Part shown: positions 3,795 to 61,610 of the stretch, in pieces | How the letters are laid out: each line of letters starts with the position of its first letter | How positions within the stretch are numbered: the first letter of the stretch is position 1 | IMG/VR virus record: IMGVR_UViG_3300028883_000032 | Span: 1 to 64,000 of that record | Length of the DNA stretch: 64,000 nucleotides | Reading direction: 5' to 3' (one strand) | Notes under the pieces: model-generated | What the model was told of the DNA's origin: nothing | Database searches by the model: none | What the model saw: only the letters and a program-made list of their open reading frames with translations | Translations under genes and position numbers: made by a program

Positions 3795-4211
3795 ATGAAA
3801 ACAGAACATTTACAGCAATTACTTGTGTCCGGACAGTTTATAGGATCTCACATGTGCCTTGCCAAAGACATAGGATCAAACGGAAATCTCTTTGGGGGTA
3901 ACATGCTAGCTTGGGCAGACGAAATGGGTGCTATTTTTGCTAAAAAGTTTACTGGAGAACCAAAGCTCGTAACTGTTCAAATGGACGCGGTTGAATTCAC
4001 TGTTCCAGTACATGAAGGCGAAATAGTTGATTTCTATGCCGCTAACCCCAAACCCGGCCATACCAGTTTAACGTTCACTCTTGTTGTTGCCAAACCGAAC
4101 AATGCCGACGGGGTAAGACAAATTGTATTTACAACGCGATTTGTTTTCGTGGCTGTCGGCGATGATGGGCACTCCAAACCAATTGAAAGGTTTGCAGAAA
4201 AGCGCCCATAG
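3795..4211 (+). CDS. acyl-CoA thioesterase (hotdog fold)
   Basis: NGNLFGGNMLAWADE motif, VTVQMDAVEF, GHTS, FVFVAV; 3' end overlaps the tRNA. Confidence 0.85.
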   Translation: MKTEHLQQLLVSGQFIGSHMCLAKDIGSNGNLFGGNMLAWADEMGAIFAKKFTGEPKLVTVQMDAVEFTVPVHEGEIVDFYAANPKPGHTSLTFTLVVAKPNNADGVRQIVFTTRFVFVAVGDDGHSKPIERFAEKRP

Positions 4212-4274
4212 TTCAGTGGTTAGAACAGCGGACTCTAAATCCGTGTGTCCTCGGTTCAAGTCCGAGTGGGCGCA
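4202..4274 (+). tRNA. amber suppressor tRNA (CUA anticodon)
   Basis: GCGCCCA/TGGGCGC acceptor, anticodon stem GCGGA/TCCGT with loop CT-CTA-AA, T-loop TTCAAGT. Confidence 0.85.
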
Positions 4275-4287
4275 CAAAGGAGACCTA

Positions 4288-5680: not shown

Positions 5681-5787
5681 ACGTAGTCCCAGATAGTAGC
5701 TTTGTTACTATCTGGGTATTTTTATCCCAATGTAAGCATAACTTAATGGCATAAGAAAGAGTGAAGTTTAACCATGCGGAGGTAAGA

Positions 5788-7026
5788 ATGCTAAAGAAGA
5801 TTCTTGTTGTCATGTTGCTTTTGAGTACCACGGTGGTATTCGGGCAAAGTTTTGAGGAAGTATCTACCGTCAGTATGGACGGTAGAAAATCGGATGCATT
5901 CCTGGTTAATAATAGTATTTTGTGTTTCTCATGTAGAGACACGGTGTATTATTACGACACCGGGGACTTTTCCCGAATGGGAGAAGTGTACGTTGACGGT
6001 GAAGTTTCCTCGCTTGAGTATAATTGGATTTATACTTATGCGAGTACAAATCGAGGCTTTGTCATCATTGACTGTGAAGACGTCTTTGATGGCAGGGCGC
6101 CGTATAATCCACGTTTTGTGGATAGAGTAAATCTTGGTGGTATAACAAACCTCTCAGTAACAAGTCGTGATTCTCTCCACGTATATGCCTCCGGTGGTCC
6201 TAACGGGGTCTTTAGGATTAATATCCAACAAGATACTAATCCGTATGTTACGGACCATCTCAGTACGCCCGGCTACGCAAACGATCTTTGCGTAGTAGAC
6301 GGTTTCGTCTACACGGCCTGCTGGGGACCGATCCACAAGCACCGGTTGGCCACGGACTCTACATACGGGGTGTGGTCTATCGAAGGACAGAACGTCAAAC
6401 GTATTGGAGATTTGAACGACGGAGTCGGAGTATGGTGGGCGTCCGATTATCAAATCGGGGCCCTTGACATTTGGGGAAACTTAACAACTTGGAGGTATTA
6501 CCCAAACTCCAATGCTGTTAAGGATGTTTTCGCCAGTGACGGCTATACTGCAGTACTTGGCGATTCGGCCGAGTATTGGATATGGGGATCAGAAGAATTT
6601 GATGATCCCGATATAAACTGGAGCTACCCGGATGGAGAACATCCTAACCGGGTGGTTGTATGGAGGAATGAAGGTGAGATATTCTCTGCAGTATTAACAC
6701 AGGAGAATATACACTTCCTCCAGTTTGTGGAAGAAAACAAAGTTTCTGACAAGGGAGAACTCCCCCAGAAGTACGAGGTGAGTGTCTACCCGAACCCGTT
6801 CAACCCGACAACCTCCATCGGCTTCAGCCTTGCACGCCAGGGGCGTGTGACGCTCGCGGTGTACGATGTGCTGGGACGCCAGGTTGCCACACTGATCGAC
6901 CGTACGATGAACAACGGTCATCACACGGTATTCTTCGATGGAAGTAACCTCTCGGCAGGAGCTTACTTCTTAAAAATACGGACCAAGGACTCGGTGCATA
7001 CCCAAAAGCTTGTATTGTTGAAATAG
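5788..7026 (+). CDS. secreted beta-propeller-like (LVIVD-like) protein with T9SS type A C-terminal sorting domain
   Basis: Signal peptide MLKKILVVMLLLSTTVVFG after GGAGG; C-terminus YPNPFNPTTSIGFSL..AVYDVLGRQVATL..G.YF..TQKLVLLK. Confidence 0.8.
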   Translation: MLKKILVVMLLLSTTVVFGQSFEEVSTVSMDGRKSDAFLVNNSILCFSCRDTVYYYDTGDFSRMGEVYVDGEVSSLEYNWIYTYASTNRGFVIIDCEDVFDGRAPYNPRFVDRVNLGGITNLSVTSRDSLHVYASGGPNGVFRINIQQDTNPYVTDHLSTPGYANDLCVVDGFVYTACWGPIHKHRLATDSTYGVWSIEGQNVKRIGDLNDGVGVWWASDYQIGALDIWGNLTTWRYYPNSNAVKDVFASDGYTAVLGDSAEYWIWGSEEFDDPDINWSYPDGEHPNRVVVWRNEGEIFSAVLTQENIHFLQFVEENKVSDKGELPQKYEVSVYPNPFNPTTSIGFSLARQGRVTLAVYDVLGRQVATLIDRTMNNGHHTVFFDGSNLSAGAYFLKIRTKDSVHTQKLVLLK

Positions 7027-8821: not shown

Positions 8822-9358
8822 TTAACTCAAAGAATTTAGAATGTCATAAGCATTCTTTACTACATCACGAACTAGTGTTTTACCACCAGAGTAAACCCTT
8901 ACGATTGCGTTTTTTCTATTTACGTCCTTTTGAAATTTAGCGTTAGGGTAAATATCTAAGAAACCCTTAGCATCGCTTTTAGATTTTGCCAACACAACCA
9001 ATCTTATACTTTTGGCGCTATATACTTCAGTCAGCATTGAAGTTATTAAGTCTATTAAGTTTGGATCTTGGTTGCAAAATTGAAATATATTAGCTTTTTC
9101 TGTACGATACCCTTCACACAGATAAGCAATATGGCCTGCTATGCTAAGGTTAGTCTTTAATAAAGATTGATCCGGGTTTTGATGACTTACTCTGGGAAGA
9201 TAATTATATTCAGATGCACTACGCATAGAAATATTGTGAAATTTTAAATACTTACGAACTGTTTTGTGATCACATTTTAAAAGCATTCCAATTTCATAAG
9301 GATTTAATTTATCTTCTAAGTAGAGTTTTTCTAGTTCATGTTTAGTAAAATTCTTCAT
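8822..9358 (-). CDS. intron-encoded HTH + degenerate LAGLIDADG-like putative homing endonuclease
   Basis: 178 aa from MKNFTKHELEK; HTH (LYLEDKLNPYEIGMLLKCDHKTVRKYL) then IAYLCEG..FQFCNQDPNLI; antisense to the intron. Confidence 0.6.
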   Translation of the reverse strand: MKNFTKHELEKLYLEDKLNPYEIGMLLKCDHKTVRKYLKFHNISMRSASEYNYLPRVSHQNPDQSLLKTNLSIAGHIAYLCEGYRTEKANIFQFCNQDPNLIDLITSMLTEVYSAKSIRLVVLAKSKSDAKGFLDIYPNAKFQKDVNRKNAIVRVYSGGKTLVRDVVKNAYDILNSLS

Positions 9359-9626
9359 CCTGAGCCTTTGGTTAGAAATAACTAATTGAATTCGGCTATA
9401 TGCGGGAAACTCATAAAGCCTACAGTACCATACGTATACCAATAGTATACTAAATTGGAAATACGTTGTCAAGTAAAAATCTGTAGGATGTACAATTGAC
9501 AATCCGCAGGGAAGCCTGTAATGGCCCCTCAGAGACTAAACGCCGAACCCTTAACAGGTAATGCTGAAGGAGATGATATAGTCCAGACCACAACAGAATA
9601 TGGCTTGTGAAAGCAAGTGTGGTAAG
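8824..9626 (+). mobile_element. group I self-splicing intron (~803 nt) in the tRNA anticodon loop
   Basis: Core elements ATGCGGGAAACTC (P), AATCCGCAGGGAAG (Q), TCAGAGACTA (R), GATATAGTCC (S); ends in G; splice point +/-1 nt uncertain. Confidence 0.88.
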
Positions 9627-9723
9627 AGGATCTAGTGTCTTCGGACGTGTGGGTTCGAGTCCCACCTCTGCTACCATTAAGATAAACTCATATGAGACAT
9701 ATGCAAAGCGACATAAAAACAAT

Positions 9724-37632: not shown

Positions 37633-37820
37633 ATGTAGCGGTCAACAGATTGCACATAAAAAGCACAGGGTCTCCGATATCCGCCGCTCATGGGGATTAA
37701 ACAGTGGTGATCAGGGCGTAGCGGACCCACCCATTACCCTGTAGCTTATTTTTTATCACGTGGCAACGTGTGAAGCGGGTTACGCCGGAATGTGGTCAAA
37801 TACTCGACCCCTCGCTATAT
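37633..37820 (+). ncRNA. candidate structured ncRNA (family paralogue B)
   Basis: Ends pair (ATGTAGCG/CGCTATAT); CAGGGT/ACCCTG stem; motif order shared with 35565-35774. Confidence 0.6.
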
Positions 37821-37840
37821 TAAATCAATCCGGCCCCCAT

Positions 37841-37940
37841 GTACCGGTAGTTCAAATGGTTTAGAACCTGCGTAAGTAGGGCAAGATCGCTGCCCGAAAA
37901 ACGCGGAGATGGAGGATTCGAAGACCTCCCCGGTATGCCA
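37841..37940 (+). ncRNA. tRNA-like RNA with hairpin inserted in the anticodon loop
   Basis: GTACCGG/CCGGTAT acceptor + GCCA, GTTC/GAAC D arm, 27-nt anticodon loop containing GGGCA/TGCCC hairpin, 9-nt T-loop. Confidence 0.75.
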
Positions 37941-37944
37941 TTTA

Positions 37945-38013
37945 AGCAGGGCGTGTAAGCGGATCCGCGGCTAAGCAAGCGTTTAGCTAGAATGTTCGAG
38001 CCATTCTCCTGCT
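37945..38013 (+). ncRNA. compact tRNA-like element
   Basis: AGCAGG/CCTGCT closing stem, GCGG/CCGC hairpin, GCTAAGC/GTTTAGC hairpin, AGAATG-TTCGAGC-CATTCT T arm. Confidence 0.5.
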
Positions 38014-38058
38014 GCGATTACAAGTTTTCGGAAAACGTTCCATAGGTAAAATAGGACT

Positions 38059-38856
38059 ATGCAGCGGTTTCCCAGAATGAAAGGAAATAACATAATGTTA
38101 TTAAACAGCCATGGTAGTGAGGTAGCACGCGTTTCAATAGAGAGAAACGGTGATCCTCTACGAGAGACTGCTGTAGGCAGTCAAAAATTAGTACATGTCC
38201 CTGATGGGGCAGAGTATGGTATTATGATTAAGAATCTAAACTACTCACAGATTCTTGCGGATGTGTGGATGGATGGCATCAAACTAACCTCCGAAAACCA
38301 ACTTTTACTTGATGGGTATCAAACGCTTCATTTGGAGCGGTTTCTTGATACAGACCGAAAGTTTAAGTTTGTACGATATGAGGGCAGTGGACAAGAAAAC
38401 AGCGTAGAAGAAAGAAACGCTGGAATAATTAGAGTGCGAATTTGGCACAATGTTGGGTATAGGCCAAAGCCATTTATTACTCAACCAACAATGTGGTGGC
38501 AAAACTATTCCTATCCAAGCATGTTCGCAAACCCAGCTCCGTATTCACAACAGTGCCGTAGTTCTTTCAATATGGAAATTGGAAACCAAAGTGTAATGTG
38601 TTGTTCTGATGCTAACTTGGTTTCAAGGTCGATTGGAGAGGAAGAAATAGGAACAACAGTGGAAGGCAGCAAATCTGATCAATCATTCCATGAGGTAACT
38701 ACTACTCAAAGGTTTCCTTATTGGGAAGAAATTATATTTAAGCTGGTTGTAGCAGACGAGCCAACTGCTGTTGCCCATAATTCAAAATTCTGCCCCAAGT
38801 GTGGAACTCGTAACAAAAATTACTCTTACTGTCCTGAATGTGGACAAAAGCTGTAA
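38059..38856 (+). CDS. hypothetical protein with C-terminal double zinc ribbon
   Basis: LERFLD..RKFKF core; CPKCG..CPECG. Confidence 0.75.
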   Translation: MQRFPRMKGNNIMLLNSHGSEVARVSIERNGDPLRETAVGSQKLVHVPDGAEYGIMIKNLNYSQILADVWMDGIKLTSENQLLLDGYQTLHLERFLDTDRKFKFVRYEGSGQENSVEERNAGIIRVRIWHNVGYRPKPFITQPTMWWQNYSYPSMFANPAPYSQQCRSSFNMEIGNQSVMCCSDANLVSRSIGEEEIGTTVEGSKSDQSFHEVTTTQRFPYWEEIIFKLVVADEPTAVAHNSKFCPKCGTRNKNYSYCPECGQKL

Positions 38857-38877: not shown

Positions 38878-38903
38878 GGGGCTCGAAATCGGGCCCCTTT
38901 TTT
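38878..38903 (+). terminator. rho-independent terminator
   Basis: GGGGCTCG-aaat-CGGGCCCC + T run. Confidence 0.75.
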
Positions 38904-38920
38904 ATTATTTTGGAGTTATT

Positions 38921-39629
38921 ATGCTCGACCCGTTAGGTGATAGAATGAAATCTTACGAACGTGTAACTAGTTCGGTGATTGTTCCCAGAACCCCGGTTAT
39001 CTTAAGGCTTGATGGGAGATCGTTTCATACTTTTACAAAAAAAACTTGATAAACCATTTGACGAGCGAATGAGACAAGCGATGTATGCAGCAATGGAATC
39101 GCTAATGTCTAGTATATCGGGAGCCGAAATTGGATTCACACAATCCGACGAAATAAGTATTTTTGTAAAAACTTATAATAAGTTTGAAACACAAGCTTGG
39201 CATGGTGGAAAAATACAAAAAATGATATCTTCTGCTGCAAGTATTGCAACAGCGTCTTTTATACAATACTTGAGTATGTTTGAAGCCCTTCAAAAACACG
39301 CATTTACAGCAACTTTTGATTGTCGTATATTCAACTTACCATTGGAGGAAGTCGCCAATTACTTCCTATGGAGAGGAAAAGATTGTTTTCGTAACGCAGT
39401 TATGGCTTACTATTTATCACTCAACTCGCATAAATCTGCGCAAAATAAAAGCACTTCAGAACTATTGGAGTTAATTCCAAAACACAACTGGAATACTGTT
39501 GCAGATGAGTCAAAATTTGGTATTTTACTATTTAAAGACAGTGATACAACTAAACGTTCTTACTCATGCCCGATAGGAGACATGTTAAAGAACGTAAACG
39601 ATGTAGTAAATCACAGAGAAGACCAATAG
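38921..39629 (+). pseudogene. tRNA-His guanylyltransferase Thg1-like, frameshifted at an A8 run (39037-39044)
   Basis: LGDRMKSYE..ILRLDGRSFHTFT in one frame continues KKLDKPFD..TQSDEIS..FDCR..NYFLWR in the next; A7 would restore the frame. Confidence 0.85.
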
Positions 39630-40233: not shown

Positions 40234-40311
40234 GCTAGTGTAGCTCAGTTTGGAAAGAGCGCTCGACTGTGGATCGAGAGGTCATGGGTTCGACCCCCAT
40301 CGCTAGTTCCA
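40234..40311 (+). tRNA. tRNA-His(GUG), no encoded G-1, U73
   Basis: GCTAGTG/CGCTAGT-T-CCA, loop CT-GTG-GA; preceding base is T. Confidence 0.9.
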
Positions 40312-50569: not shown

Positions 50570-51345
50570 TACGACATCGGCCGCATGGGTCGTTAGACAT
50601 AAACCTTGAAAGAGGTGGATAGGGGCGTTGGCAACGTCCGGTCGTAGACAGTCAAAATGCAATCCGTTCCTCCTTCCTTAAAATTCCCGAGGGCAACGCT
50701 GTAGGCGAACCAACTGGAAGGACTCGAAACGAGACAACCAAAACTGGTGTGGACAAGTAACACGTGGTGGTGACTTGGAAACGTACCAACCAATTAATGG
50801 TGAATCGGACGGAAAGGTGGTGTGGTTAGATCGGCTCCTGTTAGAGTCGGTGTGGCTATCTACCATTCAAGGAATTTCTAGACCAGAAATCTAGAAAAAC
50901 TGCGAATCGGGGGACCAACAGGCCTCTGTGATGGAGTAGAGTATTTCGTTGCTCAAAAGGTAACGAAGCTCAAATCCCAGCGCTTCATCAGCCGAGAATT
51001 TTTAACAGATTCGCTCGGGTACGAGCACTTACTATCAATAAGTGAGATCATTTAAAGCACAAGACTGGGACGTGCTGAAACCTAAAGATGCCTCCGCCTT
51101 TAGTGGCCCTTAATTACTCGCAAGGTAATTAAGTTGTGTCGGAAACTAACTTTGCCCCGGCCAGGGTAAAGGGAGTGGTAAGATGCAGAAAGGTTCAGCT
51201 GGAAGACATGTGAAACCAATCTCGGGTTCACGGCATTTCCTACATACGTAAAGACATTTGCGTGGACACACCCTAAACCCAAATATTATGGGAATGTGGG
51301 GGTAAAAGTGTAGGATCAAATAGTCACGTCTAAACTATTTGATTT
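50570..51345 (+). ncRNA. large structured ncRNA, GOLLD-like candidate
   Basis: ~770 nt without a + strand ORF, many hairpins (CTCGAAACGAG, TTTCTAGA..TCTAGAAA, TTCGTTGCTCAAAAGGTAACGAA, TTAATTACTCGCAAGGTAATTAA); tRNA-rich phage context; terminal hairpin + T run. Confidence 0.6.
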
Positions 51346-53774: not shown

Positions 53775-54184
53775 TGTTGCGTAAAGTGTGCGTAATTGTA
53801 CGCGGGTTGCCCGGTTCAGGAAAAACTGAATTTACAAATTTCTTGAACACGCTGTCTATGGATGGTATTAATATTTTCACAACCGACGATTTTTTCACGC
53901 GTCGGGGACAATATAAGTTTGATGGCTCAAAACTTGCCGAAGCCCATAAATGGAATTTTAAACGTTTTTGCGCTACAGTAAAAGCGGGAGCAACTTACGT
54001 GGCAGTAGCTAACACAGCTACCCGCGAGGAAGAATTTCGTTCTTACAAGGAATTTGCAGAAAAACACGGTTACAAAGTATATGTAATTACTGTGGAAAAC
54101 TGGCACGGTAATAAAAATGTACACGGAGTTCCAGACGAGAATCTGGACAAAATGGACGAACGCTACGAGTTGCGTTTGCGTTAG
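53774..54184 (+). CDS. P-loop kinase (AAA_33 / polynucleotide kinase-like)
   Basis: RGLPGSGKT, TDDFF, AHKW, VANT, NVHGVP. Confidence 0.85.
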   Translation: MLRKVCVIVRGLPGSGKTEFTNFLNTLSMDGINIFTTDDFFTRRGQYKFDGSKLAEAHKWNFKRFCATVKAGATYVAVANTATREEEFRSYKEFAEKHGYKVYVITVENWHGNKNVHGVPDENLDKMDERYELRLR

Positions 54185-54198
54185 ATTTTATGTATATT
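54170..54198 (+). promoter_or_regulatory. sigma70-type promoter
   Basis: TTGCGT-N17-TATATT before the Y-RNA-like element. Confidence 0.55.
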
Positions 54199-54200
54199 AT

Positions 54201-54338
54201 AGTAACCTACCATAGAACGCAGTTCGAATCTGCGAATTCGTGTGAGCCATGACCGTCAATACCAATGGTATTAGGTTCAGTCTGCTAACGATGGCACTGT
54301 CACGATATGGAGTAATGGCAACTCGATGGTAGGTTACT
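54201..54338 (+). ncRNA. YrlA/Y RNA-like permuted tRNA mimic
   Basis: 13-bp terminal stem AGTAACCTACCAT/ATGGTAGGTTACT; T arm CGCAG-TTCGAAT-CTGCG precedes D arm GAGT-AATGGCA-ACTC. Confidence 0.65.
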
Positions 54339-54418: not shown

Positions 54419-54500
54419 AAGTCTGTGTCAAGAGTCTTGGAGACGTCATCTGCAGGTGACATGGGTTCGAATCCCGTCTTGAAGTTGCAACCACAGACTT
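54419..54500 (+). ncRNA. compact tRNA-like element with extended closing stem
   Basis: AAGTCTGTG/CACAGACTT outer stem, TCAAG/CTTGA, GTCT/AGAC hairpin, GTCAT-CTGCAG-GTGAC, ATGGG-TTCGAAT-CCCGT. Confidence 0.5.
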
Positions 54501-54760: not shown

Positions 54761-55159
54761 ATGACAAAAACTGAATTTCGAGAATTGTGGAAAGCTGCAG
54801 AAGAAAGCGGATTAGATAGATTCACTGTTATCTACTTAAGTTCCGGAGCCAAACACAATGGGCTGCTAGGAGAAATACTATTCAAACAGAATAGTATAGG
54901 AAACTCATACCCGAGTGTATTTTTTTCAGGAACGGGGCAAAGAATTACTACCTCCCTCGACAAATTAGTTGCAACGGAACAAAATTTTATTCGAACTCCA
55001 AAGGAACTGCAACCTGGATTAGAAATCTTGGTTATGGCTAATGAAGGTTCATTAGATATTGTTAATGAATCAGAAGCAATAAAGAAATTACAAAAAGATC
55101 CCAAAACAAAAATATTTACGTGTTTAATACGAAAGCAAGTTGAATTAAGACTTGTGTAA
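54761..55159 (+). CDS. hypothetical protein
   Basis: 132 aa, AAGGA RBS. Confidence 0.6.
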   Translation: MTKTEFRELWKAAEESGLDRFTVIYLSSGAKHNGLLGEILFKQNSIGNSYPSVFFSGTGQRITTSLDKLVATEQNFIRTPKELQPGLEILVMANEGSLDIVNESEAIKKLQKDPKTKIFTCLIRKQVELRLV

Positions 55160-56093
55160 TCAAGGAGATAAAAATGCTGGGAGCTCTACGGGCCTAATGG
55201 CCCCCCACAAAGTTATTGATGTAGTACAAGAAGAGTTTTATAAAGTAAATTTAACTTTAGACAATAATTTTAGATTGTCACCCCCAGACAAAACAACAAA
55301 TTTTACAACGGCAGGAATGCAGTGGTTTAAGAACCGCTTTAATAATCCGGACGGGACAAGATGTGGTAGCAGACAATCTTGTTTACGTACAAACGATTTG
55401 TCCTTAATTGGGGACGGGACACATTTAACCTATTTTGAAATGCTGGGAAATTTTTCATTTGGAAATAACGATTATGAACAATCGGTAGAATTGTGGCACA
55501 ATATTGTTTCTCAATTAAAAATCCCAGTTACATATGTTACGGTACACCCGTCACAAAAATACCATAAGAGAGTTTGGGAGAGGTTGCATTACCCCATAAA
55601 AGAAGACGAAAGCTGCGTGTGGTCAGACGGTAATATCGGAGGATACTGTTGTGAAATGTTTGTTAATGACCTCGAAATCGGGAATCTGGTAAATACTTCT
55701 GGAGTTTCAACAGATGTGGGTTTTGGTTTTGAGAGGTTAGTACAAGTTTATGAAAACCAAACAAATATTCATGACACAACTTTGTTTGATTGCTCTTTAC
55801 CTCCTTTTGTCAGAGACCACGTTCGCGCCTTGAATGCGTTATATCTTAACGGTATAAAACCGGGAGCAAGTGGACCAAATTACTCCGCCAAACTAATACT
55901 CAGAAGAGTACTATCTCATCTTGACCCAAAATGTTATAAGTTTGGGCACTGGTTAGAACAAGAAAAACTAATTAGTGAAGATGGTAAGTACAGAGCTAAA
56001 AAACACTTTAACCGCTATGGTATTAAAGACTATGACTTTGTTAAAGCCACATTTGGTTTAACAGCCGAAGAATATGAGGAAGTACTATCGTGA
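55152..56093 (+). CDS. truncated alanyl-tRNA synthetase-like protein (catalytic core only)
   Basis: DKTTNFTTAGMQ.FK, QSCLRTNDL..IGDGTHLTYFEMLGNFSF, EIGNLV, DVGFGFERL, RDHVRA..G.KP...GPNY...LILRR. Confidence 0.85.
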   Translation: MCNQGDKNAGSSTGLMAPHKVIDVVQEEFYKVNLTLDNNFRLSPPDKTTNFTTAGMQWFKNRFNNPDGTRCGSRQSCLRTNDLSLIGDGTHLTYFEMLGNFSFGNNDYEQSVELWHNIVSQLKIPVTYVTVHPSQKYHKRVWERLHYPIKEDESCVWSDGNIGGYCCEMFVNDLEIGNLVNTSGVSTDVGFGFERLVQVYENQTNIHDTTLFDCSLPPFVRDHVRALNALYLNGIKPGASGPNYSAKLILRRVLSHLDPKCYKFGHWLEQEKLISEDGKYRAKKHFNRYGIKDYDFVKATFGLTAEEYEEVLS

Positions 56094-56695: not shown

Positions 56696-56785
56696 GGCTG
56701 GTAGATGGGTATTCTAGATACTCTATGTTGGACACAAGCTCGGCTGATCACTGAGAAGAGCGGGTTCGACTCCCGCCACCTGCCA
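56696..56785 (+). ncRNA. tRNA-Ile(GAU)-like RNA with expanded D region
   Basis: CTCGG-CTGATCA-CTGAG anticodon arm and GCGGG-TTCGACT-CCCGC T arm; D region contains GGGTAT/ATACTC hairpin. Confidence 0.55.
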
Positions 56786-57058: not shown

Positions 57059-57132
57059 ATCCTCGTAGCTCAATTGGATAGAGCGCTGCGCTACGAACGC
57101 AGAGGTTGGGGGTTCGATCCCCTCCGAGGGTA
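57059..57132 (+). tRNA. tRNA-Arg(ACG)
   Basis: Cloverleaf, A20, loop CT-ACG-AA. Confidence 0.95.
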
Positions 57133-58138: not shown

Positions 58139-58285
58139 GGGTGATTGGCGAAATGGTACACGTCGCGGCTAACTTCCAAAAAATATTAAATCTATGGAGA
58201 AGGTAAACCGCTGGGGTATTAATTCTGTTAGATTTAAAACGGTTTTATGCAATTCCCCTTCCAAGTTCAAGTCTTGGATCGCTCT
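58139..58285 (+). ncRNA. tRNA-like RNA with enlarged anticodon and variable arms
   Basis: GGGTGAT/ATCGCTC acceptor, D loop AAATGGTA, GCGG/CCGC stem with ~38-nt insert, GGGG/CCCC long arm, CCAAG-TTCAAGT-CTTGG T arm. Confidence 0.7.
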
Positions 58286-61507: not shown

Positions 61508-61610
61508 TGGAGATTAAGTGTGGGGGTTCGAATCCCCTTTAATGGGTGGCTTCCTACATTATTTGGAACTCGTTGCGCAACGTGGGCCGGATCGAAGCCG
61601 GTAATCTCCA
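61508..61610 (+). ncRNA. candidate T-loop-containing structured RNA
   Basis: TGGAGATTA/TAATCTCCA closing stem; GGGG-TTCGAAT-CCCC near 5' end; CCGG-ATCGAAG-CCGG near 3' end. Confidence 0.45.

Follow-up and report, generated by a model that had tools for sequence, protein, structure and literature searches.

The 100-nt segment at positions 37841-37940 (+ strand), here called TL, lies in the tRNA island of a large phage and is a tRNA-like or pseudo-tRNA element. It folds as a tRNA cloverleaf which is not a product of chance, it carries a hairpin in place of the anticodon loop and does not decode, and it belongs with several other aberrant tRNA-like modules of the same phage. The window, i.e. the whole stretch of DNA analysed here, covers the opening 64 kb of a 206,856-bp phage record in IMG/VR (contig Ga0272443_10000067), which originates from a marine sediment metagenome. 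Our tentative reading, to which we give somewhat less than an even chance, is that TL is a maintained, tRNA-derived gene for a stable, non-decoding, tRNA-shaped RNA.

Structure of the element and its rebuilt anticodon arm

From its 5' end, TL contains a 7-bp acceptor stem (37841-47 / 37930-36) with a G1.U72 wobble, followed by U8 and A9, and a 4-bp D stem (37850-53 / 37864-67) which closes the 10-nt loop AAAUGGUUUA with A14, A15, G18 G19 and A21. The rebuilt anticodon arm (37868-37906, +) and a variable region of 4-5 nt with G46 and U48 come next. The T arm (37911-37929, +) has the 5-bp stem GGAGG/CCUCC and the 9-nt loop AUUCGAAGA, and G73 with CCA (37937-40) completes the element. All 27 pairs are Watson-Crick or G.U, none of the 54 stem positions is damaged, and by inspection the nucleotides of the tertiary core are canonical (U8, A14, A15 with U48, G18 G19, A21, G46, U54 U55 C56 ... 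A58). The minimum free energy structure given by ViennaRNA is the cloverleaf, with -35.2 kcal/mol and z = -2.9 against dinucleotide shuffles, and only 1 of 200 shuffles folds as well as TL. The original prediction, which was made from the letters of the sequence, described intact acceptor, D and T stems with an encoded CCA, and both the sequence and the cloverleaf fold agree with it; the 27-nt anticodon loop with a hairpin and the 9-nt T loop that it reported are also present. This T loop, A-UUCGAAG-A, contains the canonical UUCGA core and is lengthened by a single A at either end; the arm is scored as a T arm with one defect. Its nine nucleotides may disturb the elbow of TL.

The rebuilt arm consists of an outer stem, a symmetric 5x5 internal loop, an inner stem and a 7-nt apical loop. 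The outer stem (CUGCGU/ACGCGG, 37868-73 / 37901-06) has 5 bp, or 6 bp with C26-G44, the internal loop is AAGUA/GAAAA, the inner stem (GGGCA/UGCCC, 37879-83 / 37891-95) is a perfect 5-bp hairpin, and the apical loop is AGAUCGC. Within the internal loop, the inner helix is directly abutted by AGUA (5' strand) and by GAA (3' strand). AGUA/GAA is the consensus of the sarcin-ricin (bulged-G) motif, and such motifs are known recognition sites for proteins, RNAs and several ribotoxins, including VapC20 (PMC5737476). At the level of sequence, the arm is a match to this bulged-G consensus next to a Watson-Crick helix, assigned post hoc. The arrangement AGUA-hairpin-GAA is expected by chance about twice per strand in this genome, and the chance that both motif flanks fall on an already existing hairpin is about 4^-7. 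The internal loop was also considered as a K-turn, a reading which inspection led us to reject. No repeated or mobile copies of the hairpin were found in this genome.

TL cannot decode as written, and on this point the analysis agrees with the original prediction, since neither the intron mode of ARAGORN nor inspection gives a 7-nt loop with U33. With a lowered threshold, the intron mode forces TL to be a tRNA-Phe(AAA) with a 22-nt intron, in which the loop is UAAAAAA and U33 is absent. Inspection of the 27-nt loop showed that no combination of a prefix and a suffix yields a 7-nt loop with U33. The lack of a self-splicing core, claimed before, also held: Rfam is blank over 37700-38100 at E <= 10, with group I introns found elsewhere in the genome, and since the insert is about 20 nt long and has no P3-P8 catalytic core, it cannot self-splice.

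Chance, detection and assembly

We scanned the 207-kb genome with a strict four-stem pattern, which demanded full pairing in every stem (acceptor 7/7, D 4/4, anticodon 5/5, T 5/5), GG in the D loop and a UUCRA core in the T loop. It turned out that the + strand gave 17 true tRNAs and TL, the - strand gave none, and 40 shuffled genomes (8 Mb) gave 0 matches. Because the scan returns only true tRNAs and TL, and nothing in the shuffles, the cloverleaf of TL is regarded as real. The usual tools pass over it: TL is not called by ARAGORN in default mode, and the Rfam tRNA model RF00005 (gathering score 29 bits) has no match to TL even at E <= 10.

For the assembly, an independent Logan assembly of the source run contains an identical TL sequence (L046), and there are no variant contigs across TL. 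Both assemblies derive from one run, so they are not independent biological support. The TL sequence occurs in one sequencing run only, namely the source DNA run, and in no RNA run.

Flanking sequences and the neighbouring gene

Between the upstream tRNA-Met and TL there is a long stem-loop of about 90 nt (37661-37757, +), which is closed by CACAGGGU/ACCCUGU and followed by UUAUUUUUUAU with its U run. From its predicted structure it may be the terminator of the tRNA-Met unit or a further small RNA. A sigma-70-like promoter match (TGGTCA-17-TATATT, 9/12) lies at 37793-37821 (+), about 20 nt upstream of TL; the match is weak, and matches of this kind are no more numerous in the region than in shuffles. 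Downstream of TL lies a second tRNA-like module, TL-b, and both are located in the 5' leader of a 265-aa gene with a C-terminal zinc ribbon (38059-38856, +). After this gene stands a strong intrinsic-terminator-like hairpin (38878-38907, +) of 8 bp, 7 of them G-C, with a T run. Taken together, the promoter match and the terminator-like hairpins suggest a predicted unit of TL, TL-b and the 265-aa gene, with both modules in the leader. The 265-aa protein gave no informative family match. The zinc-ribbon family to which it belongs is phage-only, and its genes are often inside tRNA islands, in many contigs as immediate neighbours of tRNA genes such as those for Trp, Met, His and Thr.

The tRNA-handling setting of the phage

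ARAGORN finds 28 tRNAs and one tmRNA in the phage genome, and 5 of the 28 tRNAs have an encoded CCA. No shared promoter motif was found upstream of the phage tRNAs. The tmRNA (genome 150804-151167, tag GETPVLKAA) is located outside the window, as are the genes for a CCA-adding enzyme (genome 135754-137415), an Rnl1-like RNA ligase (genome 192724-193830) and an Rnl2-like RNA ligase (genome 148587-149570). A phosphoesterase gene is also encoded by the phage, and by their sequence the two ligases and the phosphoesterase make tRNA damage and repair plausible in this phage, at that strength and not beyond. A Thg1-like tRNA-His guanylyltransferase gene lies at 39009-39629 (+; phrog_4717, E 6e-49; Pfam Thg1), and a tRNA-His (40234-40311) without an encoded G-1, with U73 and a G1.U72 wobble, is found 0.6 kb from it; the phage may supply its own G-1 addition for this tRNA.

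Several other features were observed in the same genome. A tRNA with the anticodon CUA (amber suppressor; 4202-4275, +), labelled Pyl by ARAGORN, may point to TAG recoding in part of the phage genome. In an odd tRNA outside the window (genome 162777-162851), the anticodon loop has 8 nt and the T loop is non-canonical. The similarity of a 313-aa ORF (55152-56093, +) to alanyl-tRNA synthetase (TIGR00344, E 2e-22, far under the cut-off) is confined to the N-terminal catalytic part of that enzyme. The tRNA island also contains a GOLLD-like large structured RNA (50929-51337, +), which matches Rfam RF02032 over the full model length with 126.7 bits and E 5e-33, where the gathering score is 150. The ORF at 5761-7026 (+) has a T9SS type A sorting domain, which suggests, from sequence, a Bacteroidota host.

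Besides, two further tRNAs of the phage are split by group I introns. One intron is located at 9345-9604 (Rfam RF00028, 71.1 bits), with the tRNA 3' half at 9649-9680, and the other at genome 64523-64721 (L053:523-721; 49.2 bits, just under gathering), with the tRNA 3' half at about 64772-64799 (to L053:799). Both 3' halves have a perfect T arm and an encoded CCA, and their 5' exons were not located. The apparent end of a homing-endonuclease-like ORF precedes the second intron. That two tRNAs are split in this way means that interrupted tRNA genes are tolerated in this phage.

Orphan T arms and other tRNA-like modules

We counted T arms on the + strand over 1-66 kb with annotated tRNAs masked, an arm counting as perfect if its stem had 5 bp with a closing G-C pair and its loop read [G/U]UCRANN. 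The count was 8 perfect orphan T arms where 0.28 are expected (maximum 2 in 100 shuffles), and T arms with exactly one defect numbered 6 against 9.5 +/- 3.1 expected. Relics at steady state would give about as many copies with one defect as perfect ones, and since no such excess exists, the T arms are either very young or under selection. Two of the 8 are the 3' halves of the tRNAs split by group I introns and the other 6 are unexplained; 7/7 acceptor pairing is present in 3 of these 6 modules.

The six orphan modules are missed by tRNA finders and occupy gaps between ORFs and tRNAs. TL-b (37945-38018, +) begins 4 nt after TL and has the 7/7 acceptor-like stem AGCAGGG/UCCUGCU and the T arm GAAUG-UUCGAGC-CAUUC, while its D and anticodon arms are non-canonical and it lacks a CCA. 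TLe (56696-56784, +) has 17 extra nt inserted between its D arm and its anticodon arm, and an anticodon-like loop, CUGAUCA, and TL2 (58139-58285, +) has a Gly-UCC-like loop plus inserts. The remaining three, TLc (54165-54242, +), TLd (54436-54485, +) and TLf (61522-61545, +), likewise have perfect T arms. If selection acts on the orphan T arms, its target would be either the tRNA top half as such or functional RNAs, so far unrecognised, that contain the arms; the arms could also be parts of functional tRNAs which have escaped recognition, and not of top-half modules. The non-coding gap of about 450 nt around TL, together with the other degenerate modules, could equally be a tRNA graveyard.

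Relatives in other phages

Homologues of TL were searched in several ways. With blastn against 50,697 phage records, only the neighbouring tRNA-Met was matched. Five exact or degenerate TL patterns gave no homologue over IMG/VR, the 18 matches of the loosest pattern being chance or ordinary tRNAs. The TL covariance model (R1) gave no homologue over 96 fetched loci (about 0.76 Mb) and a whole 160-kb relative, and none emerged from nhmmer when the whole 449-nt intergenic region served as query. Close relatives of the phage were sought through its genes: the best match was at most 39% identical for the neighbouring 265-aa gene and at most 46% for the Thg1-like gene, the terminase gave two short fragments only (57-64%), and the DNA polymerase gave none.

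A distant phage on a freshwater metagenome contig contains a tRNA body with an insert in the anticodon region (L103:72-195). In this element the acceptor stem is fully paired (7/7), the D loop is canonical, the T loop reads UUCGAAU and the insert is 46 nt long with an 8-bp hairpin, and the element is located upstream of a 30%-identical homologue of the gene downstream of TL. TL and the L103 element share the arm base (N)GCGU-AAG.A ... RAARA-ACGC(N), and a GCGU stem at the anticodon-arm position is present in 0 of 80 distinct ordinary tRNAs from the fetched loci. The L103 element has no AGUA/GAA motif, no 9-nt T loop and no CCA, and in L074, a contig related to L103, the element and the adjacent small ORF are both absent, so that any homology between TL and the L103 element rests on a 7-mer and synteny. 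In IMG/VR, patterns built on the shared signature gave no additional member.

Further tRNA islands of other phages have aberrant tRNA bodies in which hairpins are inserted or arms added (L084:3552-3666, L064:6760-6882 and L065:3302-3424), and these three as well as the L103 element adjoin homologues of the 265-aa zinc-ribbon gene. Between the L064 and L065 elements there is a compensatory U-A to G-C change in the T stem. It is conceivable, if rather unlikely, that TL, the L103 element and the other insert-bearing tRNA bodies form an unrecognised class in large phages, in which the top half would be a scaffold for processing and stability and the anticodon arm a variable hairpin on the conserved base GCGU-AAG ... 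ACGC. Members of such a class would be natural tRNA-scaffolded regulatory or decoy RNAs, or tRNAs with a new kind of protein-spliced intervening sequence.

Origin of TL and alternative explanations

The reading of TL as a gene for a maintained RNA is based on its flawless helices and intact tertiary core without a near paralogue, on a CCA that is encoded although this is so in few tRNAs of the phage, on an insert that is structured, with the AGUA/GAA motif, and not random, and on the perfect-or-nothing pattern of the orphan T arms together with the L103 parallel. The closest paralogue is tRNA-Arg(ACG) at 57059, and because the TL model gives it 29.6 bits and TL itself 130 bits, TL is not a recent duplicate of an extant gene. 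The same tRNA-Arg(ACG) has the anticodon-stem strand CUGCG in common with TL, and this identity speaks for an alternative which we hold to be a real possibility but on the doubtful side, namely that TL is a young tRNA pseudogene, once decoding and possibly Arg-like, which has not yet decayed or been deleted. Its lesions would be an insertion or partial duplication of about 20 nt in the anticodon loop and a T loop lengthened by two 1-nt insertions. Such a history accounts for a singleton whose homologues were not found in the searches, whose two functional loops are both damaged, and which lies in a non-coding stretch beside another degenerate tRNA-like piece. The insert points the same way, as its part AGATCGCTGCCC is identical at 11 of 12 positions to AGAGCGCTGCCC of tRNA-Val (D-stem/anticodon-stem segment) and it is alike at 13 of 22 positions (own count) to the preceding 21 nt of TL. 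These likenesses are compatible with an origin by slippage or illegitimate recombination, at weak significance; for the tRNA-Val segment the chance count is about 0.08 by our own estimate, which weakens its weight for a pseudogene. Against a pseudogene, every lesion is a loop insertion while the stems are untouched, a near-identical paralogue is absent, the insert is a perfect hairpin flanked by a recognised motif, and the genome has no surplus of slightly damaged T arms, contrary to decay at steady state. A chimera of two tRNAs was considered as well and rejected, since only the first of the two candidate 5' strands, and not the second, forms a perfect stem with the 3' anticodon-stem strand. 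Even if TL is only a fresh pseudogene, it would still be a record of phage tRNA gene death via loop insertions.

Two other explanations give the hairpin a specific purpose or fate. The original prediction proposed a non-decoding mimic, as a decoy for anticodon nucleases, synthetases or RelA-type sensors. The non-decoding part of this stands; a decoy for anticodon nucleases, however, should retain the loop which those nucleases recognise, and TL has lost it. In its concrete form, the idea would make TL a dedicated decoy for a tRNA sensor or for a host toxin that targets tRNA or rRNA, such as an anticodon nuclease, a nuclease of the PIN/VapC type or one that attacks the sarcin-ricin loop. It fits this idea that TL combines an intact tRNA body with a motif of the sarcin-ricin type, a recognition site for ribotoxins such as VapC20 (PMC5737476), and that the phage invests heavily in tRNA supply and repair, but the apical loop differs from the GAGA tetraloop of the sarcin-ricin loop, no anti-defence gene of known type is linked, the searches gave no conserved homologue of TL, and the proposal is purely a reasoned one; we consider it quite improbable. 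We think it very improbable that TL is the precursor of a decoding tRNA from which the hairpin is removed by a protein-dependent or unknown cut-and-ligate step, for example by an endonuclease together with a phage Rnl1-like ligase. The phage does have Rnl1-like and Rnl2-like ligase and phosphoesterase genes, insert-bearing tRNA bodies exist elsewhere (TLe and TL2 in this phage, L103 and L084 in others), and two more of its tRNAs are interrupted by group I introns. But no contiguous excision from TL leaves a 7-nt loop with U33, TL has no group I core, and its 9-nt T loop would persist after any splicing. The archaeal bulge-helix-bulge, in which a 4-bp helix at the junctions lies between two 3-nt bulges, also offers no way out: by inspection the junctions of TL lack this geometry, since the internal loop is a symmetric 5x5 loop and the AAAA before the 3' stem strand cannot pair with UAGG, and EndA (TIGR00324) is absent from the phage genome, where the controls were positive.

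Proposed mechanism and significance

For the transcription, processing, selection and any role of TL as a maintained gene, we infer the following course. The parts read by tRNA-handling enzymes, that is, the acceptor/T top half, the elbow nucleotides, the discriminator and CCA, are intact. TL would be transcribed together with TL-b as the leader of the 265-aa gene, RNase P would cut at its 5' end, and its 3' end would be trimmed back to the encoded CCA. The rebuilt anticodon arm would form a rod of about 16 layers, with AGUA/GAA as an S-turn-type internal loop and the 7-nt apical loop at its end, and this rod would keep TL out of the ribosomal decoding site and offer a surface for binding protein or RNA. 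The role of TL would then be mRNA punctuation, or that of a trans-acting binding RNA.

The usual view of a phage tRNA island is that of a set of tRNAs for codon supply or anti-defence. Beside 28 regular tRNAs, the island described here holds tRNA-shaped modules which gene finders miss, with top halves intact and bottom halves rebuilt or missing. If these modules are maintained, they would represent a natural reuse of the tRNA scaffold beyond decoding, such as processing punctuation, protein binding or decoys, and TL would be the cleanest object for testing this because it has a complete body, an encoded CCA and a defined structured arm.

Comparison with known systems

Like ordinary phage tRNAs (RF00005), TL has stems of 7/4/5/5 bp, U8, G18 G19, the UUCGA core and a discriminator with CCA, and it is positioned on the same strand in a large-phage tRNA island; unlike them, it has a 27-nt hairpin-bearing loop without U33 or an anticodon, and a 9-nt T loop. 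Among small RNAs of phage tRNA clusters, species 1 and 2 of phage T4 (rnaC and rnaD) are stable RNAs of unknown function that lie among the T4 tRNA genes and are matured with them. TL would resemble them as a small RNA among phage tRNA genes, a likeness that serves as a lead.

The tRNA-Other of Bacillus cereus is reportedly a regulatory pseudo-tRNA which stands outside translation and can still have a cellular role. Such pseudo-tRNAs and tRNA pseudogenes are tRNA-derived and have no translational use, as is the case for TL, whereas TL has no sequence relation to tRNA-Other and its defect is a structured insertion instead of point changes. The tRNAs of the same phage that are split by group I introns are also interrupted in the anticodon region; the insert of TL differs from those introns in being only about 20 nt long and in lacking P3-P8. 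Archaeal bulge-helix-bulge introns are short inserts at several positions of the tRNA, and TL, TLe and TL2 likewise have short inserts at various positions of the tRNA body, but TL does not have the corresponding junctions, the phage has no EndA, and the context is of bacterial type (tmRNA, T9SS-domain protein).

In the tRNA-like domain of tmRNA and in YrlA (Y RNA-like), the top half is kept, the anticodon arm is replaced by another helix, and the molecule does not decode. The TL locus has no Rfam match to tmRNA or YrlA, and TL differs from these RNAs in its normal D arm and its normal 5'/3' topology, while it shares with them a retained acceptor/T top half, a replaced anticodon arm and the loss of decoding.
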